This document shows, in pieces, positions 7,995 through 24,393 of a DNA stretch of 64,000 nucleotides (position 1 is the stretch's first letter; every line of letters begins with the position of its first letter). The stretch comes from Corallochytrium limacisporum Hawaii (taxonomy: Eukaryota > Protista > Pluriformea). The position numbers were made by a program, and so were the translations under genes. Under the pieces are notes generated by a model that saw only the letters and a list, made by a program, of their open reading frames with translations, did no database searches and was not told where the DNA came from. The stretch covers positions 62,001 through 126,000 of the forward strand of contig PDIP01000014.1 in NCBI GenBank assembly GCA_002811645.1, in the 5' to 3' direction.

Positions 7995-10322
7995 ATGGAT
8001 AGACCTGCCGTAGATGACGCATCAAGCGTCCGTACCGCGGCGGCAAGTGTTTTAGAGCTACTGCAACGGAAACGCAAGATACTGACACCAGAGGTTAATC
8101 AAGAGCTGGTGATATGTCCTGCATGCTCGTCTGAGGTTGCATCAAACAAGATCAATGATCACTTGGACAAACAATGCACATCTTTCTCAAAGTCCCCTTT
8201 AAGGCCTCAGACAAAGCGACTCTTAAACGTTGGTAATTATTGGAAGGAGACTGCCGCTGGAAGACGAGACTTCCCAGCGGGAGAAGAGAGAAGGAAAGGT
8301 ACGAGGATAATCGATATTTATGCCCAACCCCTTAGCAGAAGAGGCACAAACTTCACGGGGAAAAGACTGAAACTTGACGATGCGGCCGATGTTGATTGGA
8401 AGAGTCCAATTCACATAGACATCCCGAATCGCTGTCGATACTATCATCGGCATTTTCTCCAGATTTTGGAAGCGGTTTTTGCACATCGTCATAACTGTAA
8501 ACTTTTCACCAGTGGTGAACTCGATCACGTAAAAAAACTGCTCTCGGCTTCAGGGGTGGAACAACGCTTGTTCATACGCCTGATGGGTCGCAAGCCGACG
8601 TGGTTCCGACTTGACAACCTTAAATACGACGAACTCCTAGACCAAGAAAAGCTCGATGAGTCAGAGAAAGGGTTCGTATCAATCACCGGGATTGTGGAAC
8701 GTCTATGTGAGCGGGGACTTTTAAGTAAGTCATATTCCATAGACGACCTTGAGGACCTGCTCAAGACATTGAGCAAGAAAGAGATGGGCAAGCTTGCACA
8801 GGGTCGGAAACTGTCTCCAGGAGTCAATAAGGGCGAGCTTACGAGAGCACTAATCACTCATCATAGGAAACAAGGTACTTTCACGACTGGGTCCAGTCAG
8901 GTTCCACGTGACCTTGCATCCATGCTGGGCACGGTTGTGGCGATCCCGACTGAACTGAAGGATCTGTTCAGCAGAATACGCACACTCTTCTCCCTTAACT
9001 TTGAAAACGATGAATTGGCACCCAGCATCCTAGTGATGGAAATGAAGAATCGGGTTGTCTACCCTAAGTATGCCATCTCTCTGGGATCGGAGGGGATATT
9101 CTTGTCACGCTCCACATTTCGGGAGTACCATTCTGCTATGGTGAAACGACTGCAGATGGAGGCTTTCATCTTTGAAAAGAAGTTTGATGAGGCCCTCATC
9201 TTGTTGGCAGAAGCAAGAATGCAGCTATGGGATGGTAATGATCTTCGCTGCAGTTTGGTTGAAACTGTGCTCGAGAGCCCCTTTCTTCGCCGCTTTCATG
9301 CGGGAGAAGTCTACATGTCGATGCTGACAATAGGGGCCGAAGTGTTTGAGCGTTTACATCGGTGGAGTGACGCCTGTGATCTGTACGAGCAAATGATTAA
9401 GCAACACATCTTTGGACACAGTTATCGTGGAAAATGGTACGATCGCATTAGCATCAACCTTAAGGACCACCTCAACCATCACCATGAGTCCGCAATGGCA
9501 ATTGTGGCTGGCCTGCGCGACCCGGTGATCTGTACTTCGCGCAGGCTGGCCCTGCAGAAACGGCTACAGCGACTGCGCTCAAAGTATCCATTTGCGTCTG
9601 ATCTGTGCAAAGAAAACGAGTCCTTGTTTCTAGACATGAGGCCATATCGCAAACGTGAATTTATCGGAGAAGCGGTCCTTGGGAACATACGCTCTCTCAA
9701 AGCCAATTACATCTTCGATGATTGTCTGGGCTCGGTGGAAGAATTCGCTCTCTGGCAGTATGCCAGGGATGGATGGGCTGGCATCCACTGCGAGAATGCT
9801 TTGTTGCATCACCTCTTTTCTGTGGCGCTGTGGGATATTCTGTTCATGCCTGTCGACGGAGTGTTCATTTCAAAGTATCAGGTTGCACCGCTGGACCTTG
9901 CTACCGAAGCTTTCTATTTTGCGAGACAGGAAGCGATCGATGCTCGTCTCCGGCGTTTCCGAGAAGGTACAAACGAGATAAAGAAGGATATTGAAAGGCA
10001 GTTTCAGCTTTACTCAAGCCACAACGGTGCGTCTGCAAATTGGGATCGCTTCTCCTTGGAGTTCACATTGACGGCCGTAGATTGCATCGGTGCGGAGGTT
10101 CTGACTGGTGTCTTCACTGTTCTCTGCAGGGACTACCGTCATATGGCTGGCGGTCTTCCGGATCTGTTTCTGTGGAAGTCCAAGGAAAATGAGCACGTCT
10201 TTGTTGAAGTAAAAGGGCCTGGGGATCGTCTGAGTGAAAAGCAGCGCCTGTGGCTGGACATCCTAGCCGGTGCTGGAGGTACTGTCGAGGTCTGCTTAGT
10301 GAAGACGGTGGAAAGTCGGTAG
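7995..10322 (+). CDS. FAN1: Fanconi-associated nuclease 1
   Basis: UBZ4 finger CPAC..INDHLDKQC, TPR region and VRR-NUC motif GGLPDLFLW..FVEVKGPGDRLSEKQ..W. First in-frame ATG is 7995; the ORF track starts at a TTG at 7902. Confidence 0.95.
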   Translation: MDRPAVDDASSVRTAAASVLELLQRKRKILTPEVNQELVICPACSSEVASNKINDHLDKQCTSFSKSPLRPQTKRLLNVGNYWKETAAGRRDFPAGEERRKGTRIIDIYAQPLSRRGTNFTGKRLKLDDAADVDWKSPIHIDIPNRCRYYHRHFLQILEAVFAHRHNCKLFTSGELDHVKKLLSASGVEQRLFIRLMGRKPTWFRLDNLKYDELLDQEKLDESEKGFVSITGIVERLCERGLLSKSYSIDDLEDLLKTLSKKEMGKLAQGRKLSPGVNKGELTRALITHHRKQGTFTTGSSQVPRDLASMLGTVVAIPTELKDLFSRIRTLFSLNFENDELAPSILVMEMKNRVVYPKYAISLGSEGIFLSRSTFREYHSAMVKRLQMEAFIFEKKFDEALILLAEARMQLWDGNDLRCSLVETVLESPFLRRFHAGEVYMSMLTIGAEVFERLHRWSDACDLYEQMIKQHIFGHSYRGKWYDRISINLKDHLNHHHESAMAIVAGLRDPVICTSRRLALQKRLQRLRSKYPFASDLCKENESLFLDMRPYRKREFIGEAVLGNIRSLKANYIFDDCLGSVEEFALWQYARDGWAGIHCENALLHHLFSVALWDILFMPVDGVFISKYQVAPLDLATEAFYFARQEAIDARLRRFREGTNEIKKDIERQFQLYSSHNGASANWDRFSLEFTLTAVDCIGAEVLTGVFTVLCRDYRHMAGGLPDLFLWKSKENEHVFVEVKGPGDRLSEKQRLWLDILAGAGGTVEVCLVKTVESR

Positions 10323-13300
10323 GTCTTTCCTCACTACCCCGACAATCCATCATTCTGGATTCTGAGCACAATGAAATTATTATACATGATTCATCGAAGT
10401 GTGTGATTTTATTTGATGTTGAGGATTTGATAAAGACACAATGAGCACCCCTGTTGATTTTTGCAGACCACATTTCTTCAATGGGCTGGCGGGAGGTGCG
10501 ACCAAGCCTCCCTACAAATGAAATCCACAGCTGCCGATGTCTCGTGCCAAGCGTTCGGAACCACACTGTGTGGTACTGAGACAGCGGAGCAGAAACAGCG
10601 CTCTTGCAGGCCGTCGTGTTTTCGTACTCTATTCTCACCAATGCATTCGATCTTGACCTAAAGGTAAGCGGTGTGCGTTTCCTCAGTGCATCTGTACGGA
10701 CTTGGGGTTGCCTAGCGAAGTTTGATGCGTTTGCCAAGTACGCTCCGAGCCGCACGTCAACCCAGAGAAATCGGTTGGTACATTCCTGCACCCACACTGC
10801 CTGCAAGGAAAAAGGAAGAAATAAAGCGTACACAAGAAATTGATTCGGGATTATGTAAATCTGCGGCGCAAGTGCATTAGTGGACGCTAGCGTAACTGTA
10901 ACACCAATCGAGACGAGTTTGGTCCCTACGGAGGATGCTGGTACGATCCTTATACGCGTTCGTTTTGTATACGCGCTCGTTCGTGGGGGCAGAAGCCCAT
11001 GACTGGTACCTTCTTGTCCAGACAGAAGTCGAGCCCGTAGTAGAACGAGGGGGTTGGGGTGCGAGGGACCAAACAAGGAACGGACAACCGGATCGTCGCC
11101 TTGGGCGGCGACATCCATGGAAATGCGACATACACAGAGACGGACCCACATCAGCAGGCTCATCACCCTCATAAGTCGCATGAAGAGACTACACCAGAGC
11201 TCTGAACCGATGCATGTCTCGGATTGCAGCGCAACAGCACTTCAAAAATTGTGAGTCGCAGCATTCGACCTTGGCAATTGCTCTAGCTGCGCTGGTAGAT
11301 TTCGTCCTGATTTTTCTTGCCTTTTCAATGCTTCCGAAAATGTGGGTTCGTTTGCTATGCGATCTCAAACAAAGCAATTGCGTCATTAAGAAACCAGCTA
11401 TAGACTTATTGCTTCTACCCGGTCAGTTTTTTCCGTCACCCACAAGCCGATCAGAAAACGATGTGTTTACGACGGTAAATTCCAAAACAAGCTACCACGA
11501 GCACGGAGCAATCACCGCAAACCCGCAAGCAAAAGCGCCCATGGGATGTCTGGTGGACTTCCTATGTACTTGAGGCGGCCGCGCTCGTTCTGTTGGCATC
11601 AACCAAAAAGAATGACCAGATCGCAGTATCGCACATGGGGATATTCGCTCATGCATGGACAGTGTCTCGAGCAGTAAAAGTTTTAGCCAGCGATGATGAT
11701 GACCATGTCCTAGCGATCATCCCGCAGCACGGTACATGGATTCCCATTTGCTTCGGGCACTACAGATCGGTTGGTCACCAATCAATTTCTGCTTTTTCTC
11801 ATACCACCAGGGTGCTCTTTCCATTCATGTGCGTTGACATCCCGGCAGGGATCCAAAGGTACCTGGCCGTGAATCATCGCCGACTAGCTACACGATGGCA
11901 CATGTGATACCCACTAGAAATTCTAGACAGCTGTGGATGAGGAGCTCTTATCCTTCTCTGCAGTGAAGGCTAAGCGAGTGAACGCGCGAAGAACAAAGCA
12001 GGCTCCTACGATCGCGCATAAGAATGTGGTAGGACACGACAGGGTGTCGGCACGACAACTTGGGAAGACAATATGCTTCATCGACAGTCCCATTGAGAAG
12101 GATGTTCCATTTTTGAACCACACATTCTGAAGATCTTCCTCCTACGTCTTTTGGTGCTGGCTCTCCCTTACGGTGTCTGAAGCGGGGTATCCCTCGATAG
12201 AGCTCGAAAGAGGTGTGACGTGATTCATAATTATGCCAAACTACAAATGGGACTGCCCGGATGGGTGGACGGTGGGAAACATGTTACGCGCAGTGTACAC
12301 CGCACAGCAAGAAGGCACGGTCCGCAAAAGCCTCGCATTGGTCTGCGGTGGGACCATTGGAACGTTGAACTCTGTGCTCGTTTGCGTCTCTTTTGGGATT
12401 TGTACATCAAGCTGTCCCCTTACCATTCAGCTGTGAATATGTGAACAGTCGGGAGAAATGATCTGTTCATGTAAAAAGAAACCGCCGCAGGTCATTTCGC
12501 ATCTGGGATCTCTAGGGTCATTCAAAACGGATCGTCCTATCCCTTGAAATGGCACTCTGCCGCCGGAAAACTCCAGTATGCGCAGAACCTACCCACAAAT
12601 TTGCATACCTTAGTGGCAATGGCGGGCTGTGGATTTCGAGATGAACTGTGTTCCTCGCTCTGGCTGGCGGGACAGTCCCAACGGTTTCAAGTGAAATAAT
12701 ATCGCGGTAGTGAGGCATATTGGGAATGAGCCAGGAAGATCGCGAAGCAAGGGACGAAACAAGTTACCACCTTCTCTCGCCGTGTGCCGAAGCTCCTCTG
12801 TAGGCCCTCTGGCCGAGCAGAAAGCGATAGCGAACGCAAAAGTGGGATACACGGCATACTCAGTACTGAAACAGGAAAGATGCGGCACGGACTAGGAAAA
12901 TACCACACTGCAAAGGTGCGAGAAAGACCCTTCCCCTCGAAGGCCTCACTGCTGTGGCCGGACTTAAGCCGAAGGACTTCTTACGGGGTGTGGCGCGGTA
13001 AGGAAATACTTCCACTATGTTGATAGTCATACGCCGTACAAACCGCCTACAAACCGCGGATTGTTCGCAAACGCCTGTTTCCCACAAATGATGGTCCGAC
13101 GCCACACTCGTGAGGATCTCCCATTTATACCAAGGAATGCGCATGTAACAAATAGCAAAGCCATATAGACACCAGGAGAAACTATAGAGATTGTGTGTGC
13201 CTGTATTGGTTGCGAGTTGGAGCTCGGTCCTGTGTATCCGATCGCCGAAACGATGCGCGCATTGCACTACGACATAGCTTGTTGAGACTGCCGTGGAAGG

Positions 13301-14154
13301 TAGCCTTCCTAGGAAAGGAAGAAGACATCTGCCCCAGCAGGATGACCTGCTTGAATGGAAGACCCCAAAGTGAGAGATGTCCACCATGTTCACACCATAT
13401 CAGAGGATGGTGATGATTTGGGGTACTTTGCCGTCGCTCGGAAGAGTATGTGTCTTAAGCTTGCTCCGGCTGTCCAGGTCACGACTTTGTACACACTATT
13501 TCCTTAAATGTTCGGGATCGGCATATCGAAGAGGTTTTGGATGACACCATCCCTCAGATTGTCGGAAATTTAATTCTTGGATACAGTGATCTTGTGGTTG
13601 TCTTAGCGGATGAGACTCACTATTCAATTATTGATGAGAAGATAAATACCTTGGGCTTCTTGCTCATCTCCGGTTCGTCCACAGCAATCCCTCACTGTAC
13701 ACCGATAAGGGCCATCTTTGGATCCACGTCGAACATCTGACCGTAGCTATGCGGGGTCCGGTTTCCATCGTGCACCGAGGCTGCTGCTTTGTTCCGTTTC
13801 GTGTTCGTCACTGCAAGGTCGGGCGTTCCGAATAAGGACACACAAACAGAACTGGGATGGGCAACCTGCGCTTCAGGCTGGAGTGACACAGCTTCCTCAC
13901 TGCGTGAGATATGATGTGTTTCGGCTTCTGGGTGACTAACCATTGTGGAAGAAACTGGAACGCAATAGAAGATACTCTGCGCTGTAGTGCACTTCCAAGT
14001 CATTCACTTCTATGTGTCGCGCTACCTATTTCCCAACCACGTTTAGTGAAGTCACACATACTCTTGTCTGATAACTACCCAATCAAGCATCTCCCTAGAA
14101 GGGGCATTCAAGTAAGCCAAGGGAGAGATTAAGCAAATCGGAGACAGTAGCAGA

Positions 14155-17100
14155 CATTCCATTTCGGAGATCCTAGTATGGCGGTTTTGGGAAATCGATC
14201 GGTGAAACGTGGAGTTCATAAGGGGTGCTCTAGAATTCGCTTTAGTTACTTGCTATGAGAAAAGGGAGCATTACAGCTGCATAAACCTGAAGGGGGCGCG
14301 GTCGAGGTGCGCGCGCATTTCGCGCTTTCAAACAGAGGTGTTGGGGCCCCATCGTTACAAAATGGAATCTCGTAACGTGGTGTCTTTTTCCAATAGTTGG
14401 GTCAAACTATCATTTCTTCACATTCCGATCTGTTCCGAGTTTTGCATACAAGTGACCATCTTCCTGCATGCTACTGTCGTCCGCCTATCAAACCGAACAG
14501 CAACTTGCTGATTGGATTTAAGGATCGAGGCCAACTGTCTGCTCATTAGCGGTGAGTGTCTTATTTCTTTTCCGTTTCTGACTTGCGTAGCGAGCATCAA
14601 TCGTTGAAGCATACGAGTCGACGGATAATAGTATACACACGAGTTCACAAGCTGGAATACATAAGCCATGGTAAGAAGTCATCTATCATTCAGTAGAATC
14701 ATTCATGGAGAAAACTTCCAGGCACCTCACAGTGTTGACTTTTCGATTCAATGAAGTAGTGTACGAGTATTACACGTTTGTGTACTGCACCTCTGTGGTG
14801 TGTACGTCGATGAATTTATGAGTAGGACTTAACTGGTTCAGATGTTGACTTTCTCGCCAATAGCAACGTCTTCTGGGCTGCGGAGCCTCATAGCCACAAT
14901 CAACAAACGCCATCCATGATGTTCAGTACAAGAATGACTGTGAGTACCAGTACTGCAACTGTATTTTGAGTGCTAGGTTTTGTGGGGCACGGACAACGTG
15001 GCTGTGCGGAATTGGTATATGGTAGGGGTCTTGCCTTGACAGATTCTCTTCGGCACATTGCCAACAGTGCACGACCAGCGGGCACGCGGAATGCAAATCA
15101 ACGTGGTGGTACCGTATAAAGAGGTCCACAAGCAATTGATACACCGGCAGCATGACGTGGTAGGAGTGCGCTGGATTGACAGACAATTATGTCATCGGCA
15201 TGCTATGCCAACAATCACATTCCACAGTAGGCCGTGTTGGTAGAATTTCTATTCCTGCATCTTTCCCTAAAATTCACCCACGGCTGCCATTCCCCGTCCG
15301 TTGTCTACATCTTATGAATCTTTATATGCGCCCTCGAGGATGCCTCACACATTTCTTTCAGATAAAGAAGCAGTGCGAACCCCCTTTTCACGAAAACGGC
15401 GAATACAGCCCTCTTCTTCGGACCTATCCCTTGCGCTAATCATTTCCTTACATTCCTTTAACGGCTGCATGCGACGATCGCTTTCCACACTCTTTCTATT
15501 GCGCCATTTTTGCTCGTACCTTGTATCTGTGTGATACACTGTGGACGTTGTGATATCCATGGATGGAGACCGTGGTCCAATAACGGAATGCAATGGGTCA
15601 ATTGAAGACGTTGGCTTAGATAGTGATGAAATCTATGGTGAAGAGAGTCTGTTTCATGGGACAATTCCTCTGCTTCGACATTGCACTTTCCCATCGCGTC
15701 TGATGTCAATTTATGGTGAGGAATGTCGCCGTGAGCACACTAGAGAGACCCGACAACCATGAGTTTCCGGTTGTGGTCATGGACCAGTTTGTTGGCACGA
15801 CCTGATCAGATTTAAAACGATGCCAACTGACACCAAAGCCAACCCTTGACACCTCGTAACACTTCCTTAGTTTCGTAGTCTTGTGTCGTGGGGCCATGGT
15901 ATCGTGCCGTTGCCTTGCTCTGCAGGGAGGATAAACGCTGGTCACATGCATTGGTTCCACGGGCGAGCACTATTTGGGTTACTGTTGCTCCTTTTAGATC
16001 AATGTTGACTATTCTACTTTCCTGCCCAATGACGTTTATTCTGTGTTTGGACACATTCTTGGATTCTTTCCGTTTTCTATGATGTTGTGAAAACGGCACA
16101 AAGCAAGTAAAGATCCAACAGAAACTGAACCATTGTGTGACTAGGTCCTGGCAACACAAGTATTCCTATGATGGACACATTGATCAACAATATGAGAAAA
16201 TTCTGATGCAAGTGACAATATAGGGATGAGTGCACCCTATCACGTAAACTTCTAGTCCATGAACCTCGTGTAGAGTTCTCGAGCAGTACGCACAGAACCA
16301 AGGCGACTCTACCGAAGGGCTCGGGCTCATGTCCATTTCTTTCTCTCGTGTATTTTCCCTTCTGAGTGGATGCTGCTGCATACTTCTGTCGCAAGAATTT
16401 CAATGTTCTTTGCACGTTTTGCATACCGTGAGGAAGCAGTTGCTGTGCTCATGGGAATCTGCTGCATCCAATTGGAAGTAGTCGAGGTTGGGATCATCTG
16501 ACATTGTTGAGGGCGAAGACTGGATGTCGCTTTCCGCCGAGATGGTCGATGGAAGTGTGTACATGACCGTCAGTGAGAGAAAGGAAGACTCGCACCAATA
16601 CTTTCTAGGTTGATTGCAGTTTTCTCGTGGAGCACACCATTTGCGATCTCAACGAAGTTGTCAGGAATGTTTGCAAAAATTCTTAGAGTCCGCGCAGGGC
16701 CTTGTGTTCCATCCCAACACTCCTGCATCAATTTTCAGCAGATTATGTACATGGTCACAAATTTGTCGATCCCAGAATATGGAACCGGTCTACCCCCCAA
16801 AAACAAGGTGGGTGGCGCTTATTGACAACATTCACATGCAGCATAATCAAAAATAGACAGAGAGAAGAAATCGTGAGATAGGGGTCAGGACCTTCCAAAC
16901 CAGGCGGGCAACCAGCCAGCCCTACCGAATCATGTGCTGCTCCTTGCCCCCGAGAATTGAGTCATAGAAAAACTAAAAATTTCTTCTACCTTGCCTGCTT
17001 GCGTCGATGTATTGCAGTTATTCTGTTCTACACATACCAATCCCCAGCAAGATTGTAGCAACAAAAGCAGTACAGTCCCGATGGTGTGCTTCGTGCTCCG

Positions 17101-18738
17101 TCTCGACTGTCTTGGCCTGCGGACAATCCTGGAAAGACTTCAGGGGATCATATACATTGAGTTCGTACATTTTTCGTGCAATCTAGGTGGTGCGATTTCA
17201 TTCTTGTGTGCCGCAGTCATAGAGAAATTGCACCGAGAAATAGCACAGAACGTAAGTACTTCGCAGACTAATATTTCTGTACTGTTGGCCATCGTGGCAG
17301 AAAAACACAGGCTGGAATTGCATTCCTCCCATCATCACCACCCTGCCGATTTCCCTAAGAAGCAATAGAAGGATCTCCGGGGCAGGGGTAGTTCGTCAGG
17401 GAAGAGAGTGAATGGTTGGAAAACTGTGCTCCGAAAGCATCTTTTCTCCCAGGATTAGGTGAGCAAGTACTTGTCGATGGACACGACCAACCACTCAATT
17501 GCCAATGTTAGGTATTGGGGACAAGGGGAGTCATTTGTTTTCATCAGCATACATCATGGCCATCACATTGGGGCCTGGCATATGAATTATTCCCTGAACC
17601 CCATCAAGCCCCGACTAGATCTTTGCGCAATAGTCTCCACAATGTATCCAGATGTCGAAGGACGGGGCATGACAGCCATACACCTTAACATGGAATAGGG
17701 ATGGCACGCATGCAAAGGCTACTCCACCGCATTTTGCTCAATTTCTTACTCTGCGCTTGATACATACGAGCTGCCTCTATCCAAGACCAGTCCTCACATC
17801 GGAAACCAGGTCTTGTTCGTCCACAGGTCAGAGATCCCACAAATTGCTATCCAGCAGACTCCGCTTAAATTTCAGGCTCCACTACCATTCGCAAATGCTG
17901 AGAATAGGACCCCATCGACTCCACTTCAAGTAGAAGTCTGCTGTCAGGGGGTACGGGGTCCCCCCCCCCTCCCCTCGGAATTTATAGCACTTTCCTGGAG
18001 CGAAAACCCGGGTTCCCCTTATGTACCGATATGATGGAAGAACTTTTTCGAAATGTCGGGAATTGGCCGAATGGAAGTAGACAAGGCAAGGAGATATGAA
18101 CTTGAAGCCGAGCCCACACGATAGAGAGCGTCCTCTTTCCTACTAGTTCTAGTCCGCGTGCGGCAAGAAAACTTTTCTGCAGACGAGAACAGCCGAAGAC
18201 ATTCCATTTGTTCACTTCGGAATGCTGACCCGTGTCAGTTCTAGTCGACCATAACGAGCAGCGATGAACAGGAGACTGACACTCAACTCCAGTTTCATTC
18301 TTTTCCGACGGCTGATAACCAGCACACTCGACGAGCTGCTTAGTACCTATCGGCAACTGTGGAGCAGCGGAATGATATTATCGGGTGCATAAAGGAACAC
18401 AAGAGCGATAAACGGGTGGGTAGATGGGAAGAGTAGCTGTGGATGAGCACTAGAGTTAAAAACGCGAGAGCAGCAGCCTGGCAAGGCGATGGGAAACTGA
18501 GGAGGTGAGGAATGCAATGCCATTAGGGAACGACTCGTCTATCCTGCCTCCAGCGATAGATTTGTCCGTTGCAGGAATTTTTTTTGCATCCACAACATGT
18601 GTGTATCTCGTTCCGTGTCAGTGTGCCGTTAATGCGCTCACAGATCCATGGCTGGAAACGCATAGAAAAGAGGGAAAGGGAACGGGGACCGAAGCGTCTT
18701 CGCCCGGAGAGCCCCCGGGGAAGGGGAAAGGGGGAATG
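14155..18738. promoter_or_regulatory. Cluster of TEAD/MCAT-type sites (CATTCC/GGAATG) upstream of the Tondu-motif gene
   Basis: Hand count of 15 hexamers, starting at 14155, 14421, 15088, 15218, 15288, 15451, 15585, 15720, 16664, 17321, 18200, 18219, 18369, 18509 and 18733. About 2 are expected in 4.6 kb at equal base frequencies. Confidence 0.55.
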
Positions 18739-19145
18739 GGAAAGATGGGAAAATCGCAGATGTTATCGAAACCGGAAATTGGAAGTTAATTGGAGCTGGG
18801 GGGGGGGGGCGTTTGATAGGATTGGTCCCGTACCTTACACAGGCTTCGCAAGGGAGGGGTTCCATAGCTGCGAGAAACGGGAGTGCTCAAAAGCGATGGG
18901 GAAAGGCTGCAAGACCTGGAGAGTCAACTATTGTGCTGGCTGAGATGATCTGTGGTATTCTTTGGCAGCTTCCACTTCAAAACTAAGATGTTTAGTAGCG
19001 TCCACATAGATTCCATAAGTAAGTGTTTACAAAGGTATGCGAAATTAATAGCATCATAAGGTAAAAGGAAGGGTATTCTGCAATATGTGACCCAGCACTG
19101 TGCTAGTGCCCATAAATCATCACGTCACGGAAGAAATCCGAAAGT

Positions 19146-19418
19146 ATGAAGTCATCAGGACTTGACCTCTTGTGCGAAGTCGCGTTTACGCGATCCGAAT
19201 CTCCCTCTACCTCACAAAACCAGTCATCTCCCGGAACACCGTCTGTGCGCAGTGAATGTGCACGCAGTGAGGTCAGCGTGGACAGCACCATGAGCCTCAA
19301 TTCAAACGGTAGTGTCAGAGCGGTCCCTCAAGGCCCTTTCCAGGAGAAGACCTTCTTTTCCGCAGATGATCACTTTAAGCGCGCATTAGGTGAGGATTGG
19401 CAAAAGCTGTGCCAGTAA
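19146..19418 (+). CDS. Vestigial-like (VGLL4/Tgi-like) microprotein with a Tondu/TDU motif
   Basis: ATG..TAA, 90 aa. C-terminal SADDHFKRALGEDWQKL aligns to VGLL4 TDU2 SVDDHFAKALGDTWLQI. N-terminal GLDLLCEVA helix and S-rich disordered linker. Confidence 0.7.
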   Translation: MKSSGLDLLCEVAFTRSESPSTSQNQSSPGTPSVRSECARSEVSVDSTMSLNSNGSVRAVPQGPFQEKTFFSADDHFKRALGEDWQKLCQ

Positions 19419-19598
19419 ATCCTTGACTTAAAAACATCTTATCATCGACTTTCGCCCATTTTGCGAACATACAAAGCACACAAGCATTCACCATCAAAAC
19501 ACATTTGCTCATAGATATACATATGACGATTTTATTTATCTTGACTTTATGCTCATGACCATGTACAATGACAGACCATTAGAGGCCCATCCCATGCA

Positions 19599-20624
19599 CT
19601 AGTCGCCTCGGACATTGATGCGAATGTTGCGATTGTACACATCTGCGAAAGACGTACAAATCTGATAGTAGTGTTCGACACATGACCGTATGTAGATTTC
19701 AAGCATGAGCGCAGGATTTAGATGCAGTTTGGCCTTCCGATGGATGATGCCTGTCTTTGGACAAGATCCATGCCAGCAATGCTCGTGAATATCCTCTGTG
19801 GGCGCAACAACTTGCAAGACATAGTCAAGGCTTTCGGCCGGTTTGTAATCCTCCAAGATTGTCTGCAAACAACATTCCTTCAGCGAAAGCACGAGCGGTG
19901 TACCGCAGAGATGTGGTACAAATGGCTCAGTTTGGCACCCCAGTATGGCTGCCTCGCTGTAGGCGTCTGGCACAACGGCCGTCCTTGGAAGAATCAGCTC
20001 CAGCAGATGAGACATGCACAGGAGCTCCAACGATATACTGGTGATGGGGTTCCCATGTATTGCAAGGTTCTGCAGATACACCAGCTGAGATATATCGGGC
20101 AAAGACGTGAGTTTGTTGTTCGCAACAGACAGGACATGAAGGGTCTTCAACTCTGAGATTGCCGCGGGCAGCACTTCCAATCTGTTGCCACTTACGTCAA
20201 GGACGCGCAGCTCTTTGAGATTTGTAATATCCTCGGGGATTTGACTGATGTCGTTGCCGTCAAGGAGTAGAGTGAACAGCTTCGGCAGTTGGAAAACGAC
20301 GTCCGGGATATGTGTGAAGGAGCAGTTGTTGAGGTGTAATGAACTCAATTTTGAGCATTGAACCAGTGCTTTCGGTAGGGACTGAAGTCGATTGTATGAA
20401 AGATAAAGCTCCTCCAGATTTTGACAGCTACCGATCGCTTCCGGTAACGTTTCTATCTGGTTGTATGTGGCTACGATCATAATCAAGCTATCACACGCAC
20501 CAATTGTCTCTGGAATGGTGACGAGGTGTAGATGCCTCAAATCTATGCCATACTTTCGTCCAGCGAAAGTGCGCAGAATTATTGCCCGTGCCTGCAAATC
20601 CATAGCGCTGGAAGCTGATGACAC
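19599..20624 (-). CDS. Leucine-rich repeat protein with C-terminal BC-box-like and Cys/His segment
   Basis: About 8 LxxLxLxxNxLxxLP repeats, then SLKECCLQTI and C/H residues. Confidence 0.85.
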   Translation of the reverse strand: MSSASSAMDLQARAIILRTFAGRKYGIDLRHLHLVTIPETIGACDSLIMIVATYNQIETLPEAIGSCQNLEELYLSYNRLQSLPKALVQCSKLSSLHLNNCSFTHIPDVVFQLPKLFTLLLDGNDISQIPEDITNLKELRVLDVSGNRLEVLPAAISELKTLHVLSVANNKLTSLPDISQLVYLQNLAIHGNPITSISLELLCMSHLLELILPRTAVVPDAYSEAAILGCQTEPFVPHLCGTPLVLSLKECCLQTILEDYKPAESLDYVLQVVAPTEDIHEHCWHGSCPKTGIIHRKAKLHLNPALMLEIYIRSCVEHYYQICTSFADVYNRNIRINVRGD

Positions 20625-21555
20625 ATATGCAGCCGTGTTTCTGTTCCAATATTCTGGACAATTGACATTTTTTCAAGAAGCCGTGGAGTCTTCAATCTCT
20701 TAACAGTCCCACACACGAAATCCCAAAAATGCTGAACATGAGCAGAAAAGGCGGTAGGGACAAGTATTATCAACTTGGAAGGAACGTCGCTCTCAACTTT
20801 CAAATAGGCCTTTGGCAAACCCGCCTCCAATACATGGCTCCCAGGGCGCTCGAGCTCCGTCTCGAAAACCGGACCCGCTCAGGCTGGGTGCGTATTTGAC
20901 CTTTTTGGTTTACTAGGCCCCTAAAATTCTATGTTTGAATCCACAATTTAATCAATTTAATCAAATAGAAGAGGCTGTGGAGAATGTGAATGAGAGCTGC
21001 GGGACTGCGAACATCCAACAGGGAACAAAGAATCCATCACGTTGATAGCCATGGGCGGTGTTCTGATGTACATCGAAAGTCGGCACGAAGCGCCATAGAT
21101 TTGGCCATATTTGTACGTTCAGCTCGCCTTGGCCACCGGGAAACAAAAGTCCGCAATGCCCGGACCCCCGGGAGCCTGACCGGTGATGCCACTACATAAC
21201 TCGTATGCGTTCATCGCTTACCGGCAGGTCGAGGGATATGCAGAAGAGGAGCGAGTACATCGTAACCTTCCTCATACTTCGGCCAAAGACCCATCTTATG
21301 TGAAGTCCGTCGTGCACTTGTCCATCATTCAGCCCAACAACGAGGCCACAGTGAAGCACACGGGGGACTACTTACCCGTATCTAACGGGCTGGAAACTCT
21401 TCTGCGCAATGCTGCGCAACAATTGACCGAGTTTCCAAGAGGACGTGAGCGCCGCATACAATGAAATTAGTGAACGAGGGCATCAGTTATATATTTGGAG
21501 AATGTTGTGGAGTGGGGCTAGTCTTTGCCTGGGACCCCCATCCAAGCACACCAAA

Positions 21556-21586
21556 ACACACATACACACACGCACACACACACACA

Positions 21587-21625
<39 letters not shown>
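21556..21625. repeat. Compound (CA)n/(CT)n microsatellite
   Basis: Visible dinucleotide runs. Confidence 0.9.
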
Positions 21626-21629
<4 letters not shown>

Positions 21630-22163
21630 GCACCGACACTCAAACAAATTGTGTCTCTCCCAACTCATCATACACGCATTCGTCTTCCCAGCATCCCGTT
21701 CAGCACGGAAGCCCCAATCAGTGCTCACGGCACCAACTTGTACCACAACTAATCCGAACTCCCATCTTTCCCCTCCCTCAATTCTTCTCCTTGCCGTGAC
21801 TCTCTGCCAGGGATTTGCGATGAGCCTGCTTTGGCACGTACCCCCCCCCCTCTCCTTCGGACCGTCGGAGTTCCGAAAACTAAGTAAAAAAGCATGGGCC
21901 CGTAAAGGGGCGAAGAGTTTTTCTTCAGTCCTACTGCTTCCCCCTATACCAAGAGCACAGGCTGGCCCTCTCCGGAGTCCGCAGTGTCTCCCCCGTGGCA
22001 GGATCCAACTTCCCAAAGATCCATAATAATTGCATACGATTTTTCCGCCCGAAATTTCTCGAACTCTTTTCGGGATTTTACTTGTCGGACATGAGACACC
22101 CGAATGCGCCCTGCCAAGACAAAATGTATCGAGTATACCACGGTACCAACCTGGAGATGAGTG

Positions 22164-22380
22164 TCCCGGGCAATTACCGAGGATTTGCTCTACCGTCAGC
22201 ACGCGAAATATAGGGGACCCCACGGTGCGCGCCCATCGTTCTTATAGTCTTTGTTTGTGCTTTTTTTTCTTATCAATCTATCTTCTCCCGCTTGGGAGAC
22301 TCATGAGGTGATTTTTCGCCTGCTCCGTCGCTGGGACTTTTGTGCTGACGGTAGAGCAAATCCTCGGTAATTGCCCGGGA
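22164..22380. repeat. 39-bp perfect inverted repeat with 139-bp spacer (MITE-like or hairpin)
   Basis: 22164-22202 TCCCGGGCAATTACCGAGGATTTGCTCTACCGTCAGCAC is the exact reverse complement of 22342-22380. Confidence 0.9.
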
Positions 22381-24393
22381 GGCCACGGATCCGCCACATT
22401 CCCGCCCCTTAAGAGTAACCCACACCACCAATGCCAACACCAAGGCTCTCCCCCCCTCCCCCTTCCGGGAGGGCGGGGCGCGGGCAAACGTCAAAATCGT
22501 CGTCTCTTGCGTTCGGTGGTACTCCCCGGCTGTCCCAGAACTGCGGCTGGGGAAGGGGGGAGGGGTCGGTCGGCGGGTGGGTAGTAGGGGTGCGGCGGTG
22601 CGTGCAAAAGCCAAATGGCTTATCGAGAAGCAACCGCAAAAAAAATAGGAAAAAGGGCGGGTTGGGGAGAGAGAGAGAGAGAGAGAGTGTGTGTGAGAGG
22701 GGAGATGGGTGCTTTGTGGTGGCTTTGTGCAAACGCTGATCCCAGAGCCGCAGTTTCTCGCGCCATAATTTTCTTCTGACGACTGGCCACCAGAGCACGC
22801 ACACTTTTCGCACTCAATATCGATAATCGTATTTTCCGGTGACGTACATATTGAATTGAGTTTTTGATACAAAGTAGATTGAACTTTGTAGGGTAGGATA
22901 ATCCGAAAGCGTGGGGAGTGAGGTACCCCCCATGCTCCCCCGGTTTGCGGGCTGGTGATATGTGAATTTGTCGCAGAAAGCAGGGCGCGCTCCTTGGTAT
23001 ATTCAATACTGGATTTTGCCAAGACGCAACCGCCTGCGGGTGCTCAGACGTGGCAACGGGAGTCCACACCAAAAGTCTATTGGCATGACCCATTCCCTCC
23101 TAAAGAGCGCTATATTAAATGTACCGGAAAACTGGAGAGGAACGCTACCAGACCTCATAGGTGCACGCCGGCGGAAGCGGAAATCGGAGGGGCACGCCTT
23201 TCCCCCTCACGGCTCTGGTACCATTGCCTACTTGGCGTTGGCCGTATACTGGTGTAGGCACCAAAACAAAAAAAAGGAAAAAAGGGAAGGGAGAGTCGGG
23301 TGTTGGCGGTGTGTGCGACCGGGCTATCAAAAATCTTTCTCCCTCTCTCTCTCTCTCTCTCTCTCCCCACCCCGCGCCGCACACACCCGAGGGGAGGTGG
23401 AGGGGAAAGTTTGTTTGGCGTGAAAAGGTCATGAGCCAAGAGACTGAGGCAGGGAACGGTAGTACCCCATCGGGAACGGAACGGCGTGGTTCTCTTTCTT
23501 ATATAAAAACAGTAGTCTAGTTTCCAGTAAACTGTGTCAAAGACGCGTATACCAAGAATTGCACAGGTCCAAAAGTTTTGTTTGTTTCGGGTGATCCCAG
23601 ATCACTCGGAAGTCTTGCTTCGGCCGCTTCACGCCGAATGCAGCCAAAACATAGGTCTATCTCTGAATATATAGGTCATACTCATATAGAAGTGCCTGTT
23701 AGCATATTTAATATATTCTATTTCTTTCCAATATGTGACATTATTGTCAGTTTGTTGGTAAGTTTGTCAACGCGGGGGGACAGTGGAGTCCCGTGATTTG
23801 AAATTGTCGGCATGACTCTTCCGAACGGCACATGACAGTAACATCTCCCCACAGCAGTGGCTCTGTATACTCCTACCAGCACATTCAACGCGCCACACTC
23901 CTGGGAAACTCAATATCAAAAGTATGACACAAAAGAAATTGTGAACGGACCAGTACAACAAAAATATAACAAAAAAAATACTCTCAGGAAAGGCTTCCTG
24001 TCCTATCGCGTACATGCGGGAGGAACCGCGGAAGTTGCGTGCGTGTGCCGTGTACAGAGGGGGTACATGTGTCGCCAACTGTGCGGGTGTGAGTGGGTGG
24101 GTACGGTTCACCACGGGGTTTTGGAACCGAAAACGGTGGCGAAAACAAAACACTCACTCAGCCAAGGAGTGAACCAAGAGATAGACGAAGCAAACTGCTG
24201 TGGTTTTTTGTTAGTTTATAAAATTGGTGTTTTGTTTTGCAGTCGTCCGTGCGTACCATAGCCCAATCCTCGTTGTCAAATTGCGTGGGTATAAAATACA
24301 AGGCATAGACTCTTTCCCTCATAGAACTGATTCTATTCACCATAAATCGCATACGTTCGGGACGTTCATCCGTTAAAAATATACACAACAAAT

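Follow-up and report, generated by a model that had tools for sequence, protein, structure and literature searches.

The 8.8 kb in front of a 90-codon open reading frame (ORF) of the unicellular holozoan Corallochytrium limacisporum pose a question of regulation: why should the recognition word of one family of transcription factors be concentrated upstream of a gene whose product resembles a partner of that same family? The word is CATTCC (GGAATG on the other strand), the MCAT-type recognition word of TEAD (TEA-domain) factors, and the gene encodes a Tondu-like protein. The interval, 10323-19145, lies in a window of 64,000 nucleotides (contig PDIP01000014.1 of GCA_002811645.1, C55:62001-126000 in our contig numbering), and positions given without a contig refer to this window. 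The assembly has 24,109,830 bases in 286 contigs, with mostly intronless genes; the published description of the genome gives 24.1 Mb and 0.0 introns per kb of coding sequence (PMC5560861). An original prediction, made from the DNA letters, had proposed that TEAD and Yorkie drive their own inhibitor here through a long, animal-style regulatory region. The enrichment of sites, the Tondu-like gene and a single animal-type TEAD in the genome support part of this proposal, while the special gene desert and the Yorkie driver found no support. We favor, with moderate confidence, the reading that TEAD would bind the CATTCC cluster and thereby set the amount of its own Tondu-type partner, forming a cofactor feedback loop.

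CATTCC enrichment upstream of the Tondu-like gene

The enrichment of CATTCC in the interval is real. An exact recount agreed with the original prediction on 18 sites (10781, 12723, 13134, 14155, 14421, 15088, 15218, 15288, 15451, 15585, 15720, 16664, 17321, 18200, 18219, 18369, 18509 and 18733), 15 of them within 14155-18738, as well as on the sub-clusters of six (15088-15725) and five (18200-18738) and the inverted pair at 18200/18219. The four or so sites that had been expected were too low a figure: the genome total of 14,886 sites (one per 1620 bp) predicts 5.4 in 8823 bp, and other non-coding DNA within our background, which consisted of about 260 kb of sampled genomic DNA together with genome-wide pattern counts, predicts 6.1, against which the 18 sites are a 2.9-fold excess (Poisson P = 7e-5). 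For RCATTCC, the same word with a purine in front (an R-site), 14 were found versus 3.4 expected (4.1-fold), and RCATTCCW was 5.5-fold up. The claim that the density exceeds what is ordinary for non-coding DNA of this genome held against 13 other gaps of at least 3 kb (76 kb in total; P = 4e-4 for CATTCC and 2e-5 for RCATTCC), with 0.72 CATTCC per kb in those gaps, 2.0 in the interval and 3.2 in 14100-18800. When an overlapping 10-kb locus was shuffled 200 times with its dinucleotides preserved, no shuffle gave 14 RCATTCC (mean 3.2, largest 8).

The excess is largely confined to this word. CATTCC, which had been predicted beforehand from the neighboring Tondu-like gene, ranked second of 2080 hexamers relative to the non-coding background, with AGAAAT above it. 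In the interval, CATTCT (8 versus 7.3), CATTCG and CATACC were at background and CATTCA was not significantly up, and all one-mismatch variants pooled amounted to 119 versus 98 expected. A purine precedes 14 of the 18 sites (P = 0.05 versus non-coding sites and 0.007 versus all sites in the sampled DNA); the base that follows (+1 "not C"; A or T in the TEAD consensus) showed no significant preference. Heat-shock, MEF2, CArG, Runx, T-box and E-box words were not enriched in the upstream interval.

The sites are also unusually arranged (Table 1). Our genome-wide scan, which used four patterns to cover all orientations of three RCATTCC with gaps of up to 450 bp, returned 175 matches forming 134 clusters, seven of which contain five sites. 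None of the other six is as tight as the group at 15088-15725, which takes up 639 bp and alone among the seven has another cluster close by, at 18200-18515; the two together span 3.4 kb. The last kilobase before the ATG of the Tondu-like gene contains five CATTCC, compared with a maximum of four before any of 70 other sampled genes. The locus tops the genome for clustering of sites, yet it is not far ahead of the rest, and a stronger argument than its rank is that the enriched word coincides with the one word that its neighbor gene predicts.

Table 1. Features of the interval and of the adjoining gene (columns: feature, window positions, strand, remarks)
Interval without detectable protein-coding gene	10323..19145		FAN1 stop (+) to Tondu-gene start (+); single copy in genome
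RNA-like contig, 2653 nt, depth 115, no coding signal	11293..13945		run X3
Two ACATTCC sites	14155..14426	+	210 and 476 bp right of RNA contig end
Weak RNA-like contig, 447 nt, depth 13.5	14221..14667		run X3 only
Distal cluster: six CATTCC, five purine-preceded	15088..15725		3.4-4.1 kb from ATG
Two single RCATTCC sites	16664..17326	16664 on -, 17321 on +	
Proximal cluster: five CATTCC, three purine-preceded	18200..18738		<1 kb from ATG; inverted pair 18200/18219
RNA-like contig, run X6, minimal transcript of Tondu-like gene	19103..19492	+ (from ORF)	differs from genome at 19209 (T22A) and 19238 (silent)
90-aa gene, probable single-Tondu VGLL4-like protein	19146..19418	+	disorder predicted between two helices
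N-terminal amphipathic helix LDLLCEVA, residues 6-13	19161..19184	+	prediction
Tondu-like helix, residues 72-88	19359..19409	+	AxxHF for VxxHF; H, F, A, L, G, W in common with VGLL4 TDU2

Other clusters of four or five RCATTCC lie at C177:184732-185150, C284:49865-50534, C242:158632-159555, C50:135414-136522 and C90:24252-25226, and some of these look non-coding. Together with clusters near C88:219.8k and C79:9.8k, the last four make up the six other five-site ones. On the same contig as our window, a 3.7-kb gap (C55:19416-23158) holds seven CATTCC, mostly without the purine flank, four of them inside 330 bp immediately before a minus-strand gene of 648 aa, which is a candidate second TEAD target on the contig. 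About eight paralogous genes of 360-390 aa, arranged in tandem at C1:26000-51200, inflate local CATTCC counts. Two further words are frequent in 14100-19145, namely ACGTGG (5 versus 0.9 expected; three within 14997-15151, one reading TGACGTGG) and AGAAAT (12 versus 3.6 expected); these are possible sites of a second and a third factor beside the distal cluster, or chance.

The Tondu-like protein and its presumed TEAD

The gene that follows the interval is expressed, as judged from contigs of two sequencing runs, X3 and X6, that we termed RNA-like (the label is a guess; X2 is a DNA run). These contigs were mapped over 13700-19699 and give neither strand nor start, and a stretch that they leave uncovered carries no weight as evidence. 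The 90-codon ORF is covered in both RNA-like runs and has a contig of its own in X6. Its only matches in the Protein Data Bank (PDB) are VGLL4 entries, 4LN0_C (E = 8.4e-5 with the whole sequence) and 6SBA_B; the match falls in the last 30 residues, where the best single stretch (E = 0.12) is identical to TDU2 at 9 of 18 positions. The three best Atlas clusters are VGLL4-family as well. A single-sequence structure model (mean predicted local distance difference test score, pLDDT, 59) predicts helices at residues 6-13 and 73-88 with disorder between them. Expression and the PDB matches bear out the original call of a Tondu gene, and we regard the product as a probable TEAD-binding, VGLL4-like protein whose LDLLCEVA helix is a candidate cofactor-docking motif. 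FAN1, at the other end of the interval, is directed into the gap and the Tondu-like gene away from it, so that among coding genes the latter alone has its 5′ side facing the cluster. A 102-nt contig of run X3 leads from 19221 back to 19150. This in-frame loop of 72 nt is bounded by the 7-nt repeat AGTCATC, contains the LDLLCEVA codons and is not shown by X2; possible origins are template switching (an artefact), a circular RNA or an allele with a duplication.

A single TEA gene is present in the genome, encoding 584 aa with a TEA domain and a YAP-binding domain. Its recognition helix 3, RSRKQVSSHIQVLAR, is almost identical to the human RTRKQVSSHIQVLAR, and this TEAD is therefore very likely specific for CATTCC. 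We aligned the protein to TEAD4 and anchored the residue numbering on residues named in PMC10146773. The interface-2 positions F337, K376 and V389 are kept, as is the acylated Cys, while interface 3 retains E263 and W299 and carries D272 to G, K297 to S and E391 to C; D272 is the partner of YAP R89. The changes in interface 3 and the better-kept interface 2 would fit a TEAD that is partnered mainly by Tondu-type helices.

A Yorkie that could drive the locus did not emerge. All 15 WW matches in the genome, named from their translations, belong to HECT ligases, a SETD2-like protein and other non-Yki proteins, and a genome search with the omega-loop family (TEADIR3) reached a best E of 2.4. One report calls the Yorkie/Scalloped pair complete in this species, in passages that give no sequence (PMC7035326), and a 2026 paper places the origin of Yorkie at the filozoan ancestor (PMC13366479). 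The proposal that TEAD and Yki drive the locus thus finds no support in the WW and omega-loop searches or in the partly changed interface 3; a WW-less Yorkie is possible.

A proposed cofactor feedback loop

In the mechanism we propose, the 5 kb before the 90-aa gene would be its long upstream regulatory region, and the single TEAD would bind both CATTCC clusters and set the level of its Tondu partner. The C-terminal helix of this partner would dock in TEAD interface 2 and the N-terminal helix would recruit a corepressor, as Tgi and VGLL4 do via short motifs. The resulting TEAD-Tondu complex could then dampen TEAD targets, its own gene included, closing a negative loop, and the analogy of VGLL4/Tgi and of the YAP-TEAD-VGLL3 axis makes this sign the likelier one. 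A classical WW-domain Yorkie would not be required as the activating partner, nor would the proximal cluster require a distal enhancer mechanism. Action of the distal cluster on a gene 3.4-4 kb away would be surprising, because Capsaspora is reported to lack distal enhancers (PMC4877666), and is the most tentative step of the mechanism.

Several observations weigh against this reading. AGAAAT, an unrelated word, is equally enriched in the interval (19 versus 6.3), CTTTCC is 2-fold up, and an order-3 model fitted to this same interval, which absorbs the signal, expects 9.6 sites. Five-site clusters are overdispersed in the genome, at seven versus 2-4 expected (about two to three times the Poisson figure), and some apparently lie within coding DNA. 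Poisson simulations of the genome speak for the reading, with a maximum of at least 12 R-sites in 4.4 kb coming up in 2-5 runs out of 300, and one of 15 CATTCC in 4584 bp in 18 out of 500, a range of about 1-4%. These figures are optimistic, however, because the window sizes were picked post hoc and the genome is overdispersed. The end of the non-coding RNA contig is nearer to the distal sites than the Tondu-like gene is. Pfam made no Tondu call on the 90-aa protein (PF15245 did not match), homologue searches were blank or gave weak matches to the serine-rich middle only, with no homologous locus turning up and contigs of other samples leaving the site clusters uncovered, and the Atlas score of 0.85 is lead-level only. 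The motif has A at the V position (AxxHF) and occurs once in the 90 aa, not twice or more as members of the VGLL4/Tgi subfamily have it; the protein at best works like a Tondu cofactor for this reason, and we do not file it as VGLL4.

Some of these observations would also suit a chance or compositional cluster, in which the gap is simply rich in GGAA/TTCC words and the Tondu-like neighbor is a coincidence. The equal rise of AGAAAT, a 1.3-fold rise of TTCC words, the surplus of CATTCC clusters over Poisson prediction, and a purine preference that is marginal and has no counterpart at the +1 base all agree with it. We nevertheless consider this explanation unlikely, given that the word was set beforehand by the neighboring gene and came second of 2080, that matched long gaps are ordinary and most single-base variants flat, and that the locus leads the genome.

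Transcription within the gap

The original description of 8.8 kb without a recognizable gene holds in that no protein-coding gene is detectable, but the gap is not silent, as it contains RNA-like contigs of 2653 and 447 nt. The right end of the longer one (13945) was seen, whereas its left end (about 11293) follows from the length if the RNA is unspliced; it has no counterpart in X6 within the mapped span. We consider it a candidate long non-coding RNA (lncRNA). Neither RNA-like run has a contig in 14668-19102. With the left part of the gap transcribed, the site-rich and apparently untranscribed part is only about 5 kb; over the presumed transcript, CATTCC sites occur at an ordinary 0.75/kb.

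This transcript allows the locus to be split. The proximal sites (18200-18738) would then be an ordinary promoter of the Tondu-like gene, and 14155-15725 the promoter of a non-coding transcript running leftward from a 5′ end near 13945. The dense zone has its first site 210 bp from the contig end, the distal cluster is 1.1-1.8 kb away from it, and a minus-strand AATAAA is present at 10408, inside a long antisense frame described below. Since the contigs lack strand and start, however, the RNA could equally run rightward and end at 13945, and X6 does not contain it over 13700-19699. We therefore think a split of this kind quite unlikely; moreover, it would still need TEAD binding and would be compatible with control of the Tondu-like gene by the proximal cluster.

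At the other extreme stands the cofactor loop in its most far-reaching form, a pre-animal TEAD circuit that would run on a Tondu microprotein with no need of a WW-type Yorkie and in which TEAD would act through the cluster 3.4-4 kb upstream. Taken as a whole, this combination is decidedly improbable. If true, it would mean that cofactor feedback is older than the Yorkie arm and that distal regulation exists in a transfectable unicellular holozoan.

Sign of the proposed loop

Binding of TEAD to the clusters is a step that our proposal has in common with positive autoregulation, which differs from it in sign: a Vestigial-like co-activator would join TEAD to keep its own gene on, creating a bistable switch tied to a stage of the life cycle. 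Scalloped and Vestigial autoregulate vg in Drosophila in this manner, the single Tondu motif is as in Vg and VGLL1-3, and the WW and omega-loop searches found no Yorkie to supply activation. Against this, the motif resembles VGLL4 TDU2 (ALG-x-x-W) and not the longer Vg-type domain, and an activation region is not evident in a protein of 90 aa. A positive loop is in our view very improbable.

Coding content and size of the gap

A hidden coding gene in the interval was rejected by the codon-phase model, which found no gene-like signal across it, by the number of open frames of at least 95 codons (20 versus 20.6 by chance, none with a Pfam match), and by Pfam, Atlas and homologue searches. Searches of the interval with Pfam, Rfam, tRNA and repeat models were likewise blank, with no sign of a structured RNA, tRNA, repeat or transposon; the interval contains no repeat family, and its GC content is like the rest. 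A 355-codon antisense frame (10114-11181, minus strand) overlaps the end of FAN1 and is longer than 99% of simulated maxima; it has a negative coding score and no Pfam or Atlas match and is probably not a gene. A decayed gene, or the transposon or viral insertion that the original prediction had named as its own undoing, with the CATTCC words as remnants, could claim this frame but is largely refuted by an interval that is single copy and ordinary in GC, without repeat families, Pfam, Atlas or homologue matches, or codon-phase signal.

The size of the gap, which had been taken for a special, animal-style feature, is not exceptional. Within 200 kb of sampled DNA we found gaps of 18.5, 10.1, 7.3 and 6.3 kb, and other regulator genes also follow deserts of 10-18.5 kb, in which CATTCC has its ordinary density. 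The TEAD gene itself (C171:72256-90721) follows about 18.5 kb of non-coding, simple-repeat-rich DNA whose 14 CATTCC are an ordinary density, so that autoregulation of TEAD is not supported; the 7.3-kb gap is also near the TEAD gene and ordinary in CATTCC density. A C2H2 zinc-finger gene (C1:8851-19998) has 10.1 kb of non-coding DNA upstream (seven CATTCC) and 6.3 kb downstream. Transcription-factor genes of this genome seem to have long non-coding flanks as a rule, and desert size alone is ordinary for its regulator genes. The next-largest gap of our window (20604-24393, 3.8 kb) is non-coding by the codon-phase model and has only two CATTCC.

Significance and comparison with known systems

To our knowledge, Hippo-pathway proteins have been described in single-celled relatives of animals while their direct target DNA is almost unknown. 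If TEAD binds here, the regulatory link from TEAD to a Tondu partner would be common to animals and a lineage that split before the filastereans, which would bear on the idea that Tondu-type repression is the older partnership of TEAD. Stable transfection of this species has been published, as cited in PMC10959527, and with two short clusters to work on, the loop, its sign and distal regulation outside animals become directly testable. Our literature search for Corallochytrium and Tondu returned no paper, and the locus was not found in the published work searched. The Tondu domain has been described as premetazoan (PMC12922143), and the induction of VGLL3 by YAP-TEAD is published as well.

The closest parallel is the VGLL3 axis of human cells, in which chromatin immunoprecipitation (ChIP) and reporter assays showed that YAP-TEAD directly induces VGLL3, which then represses via NCOR2 (PMC8881512). 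There, as proposed here, TEAD directly controls a Tondu-domain gene via several kilobases of DNA upstream, with a 5.5-kb promoter reporter responding, and the protein made competes at TEAD and brings in a corepressor. Unlike that system, which has ChIP and reporter data, ours is read from sequence, no YAP turned up in this genome, and the gene product, of 90 aa, has a single TDU2-like helix. The default repressors Tgi and VGLL4, which use short corepressor motifs, resemble the 90-aa protein in being mostly disordered with a TDU2-like HF-x-x-ALG-x-x-W helix near the C terminus. They differ from it in having two motifs, where the protein here has one with A for V at the first pocket position, and the 90-aa protein shows no PxDLS-type or PPxY motif and has an N-terminal LDLLCEVA helix. 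In Drosophila vestigial, clustered TEA sites in intronic enhancers are bound by Scalloped in a positive loop; the likeness is that of clustered TEA sites before or at the gene of TEAD's own Tondu partner, although they are upstream here and intronic there. Promoters of fungal Tec1/AbaA targets (FLO11, brlA) combine upstream regions of several kilobases with multiple CATTC-type sites in genomes that are likewise compact and unicellular, and do so without animal-type enhancers. Their consensus CATTCY includes CATTCT, the variant that is flat here, and in our case the target is a TEAD cofactor. Taken together, these comparisons suggest that the locus would work like an animal TEAD-to-VGLL feedback, through a predicted regulatory region.

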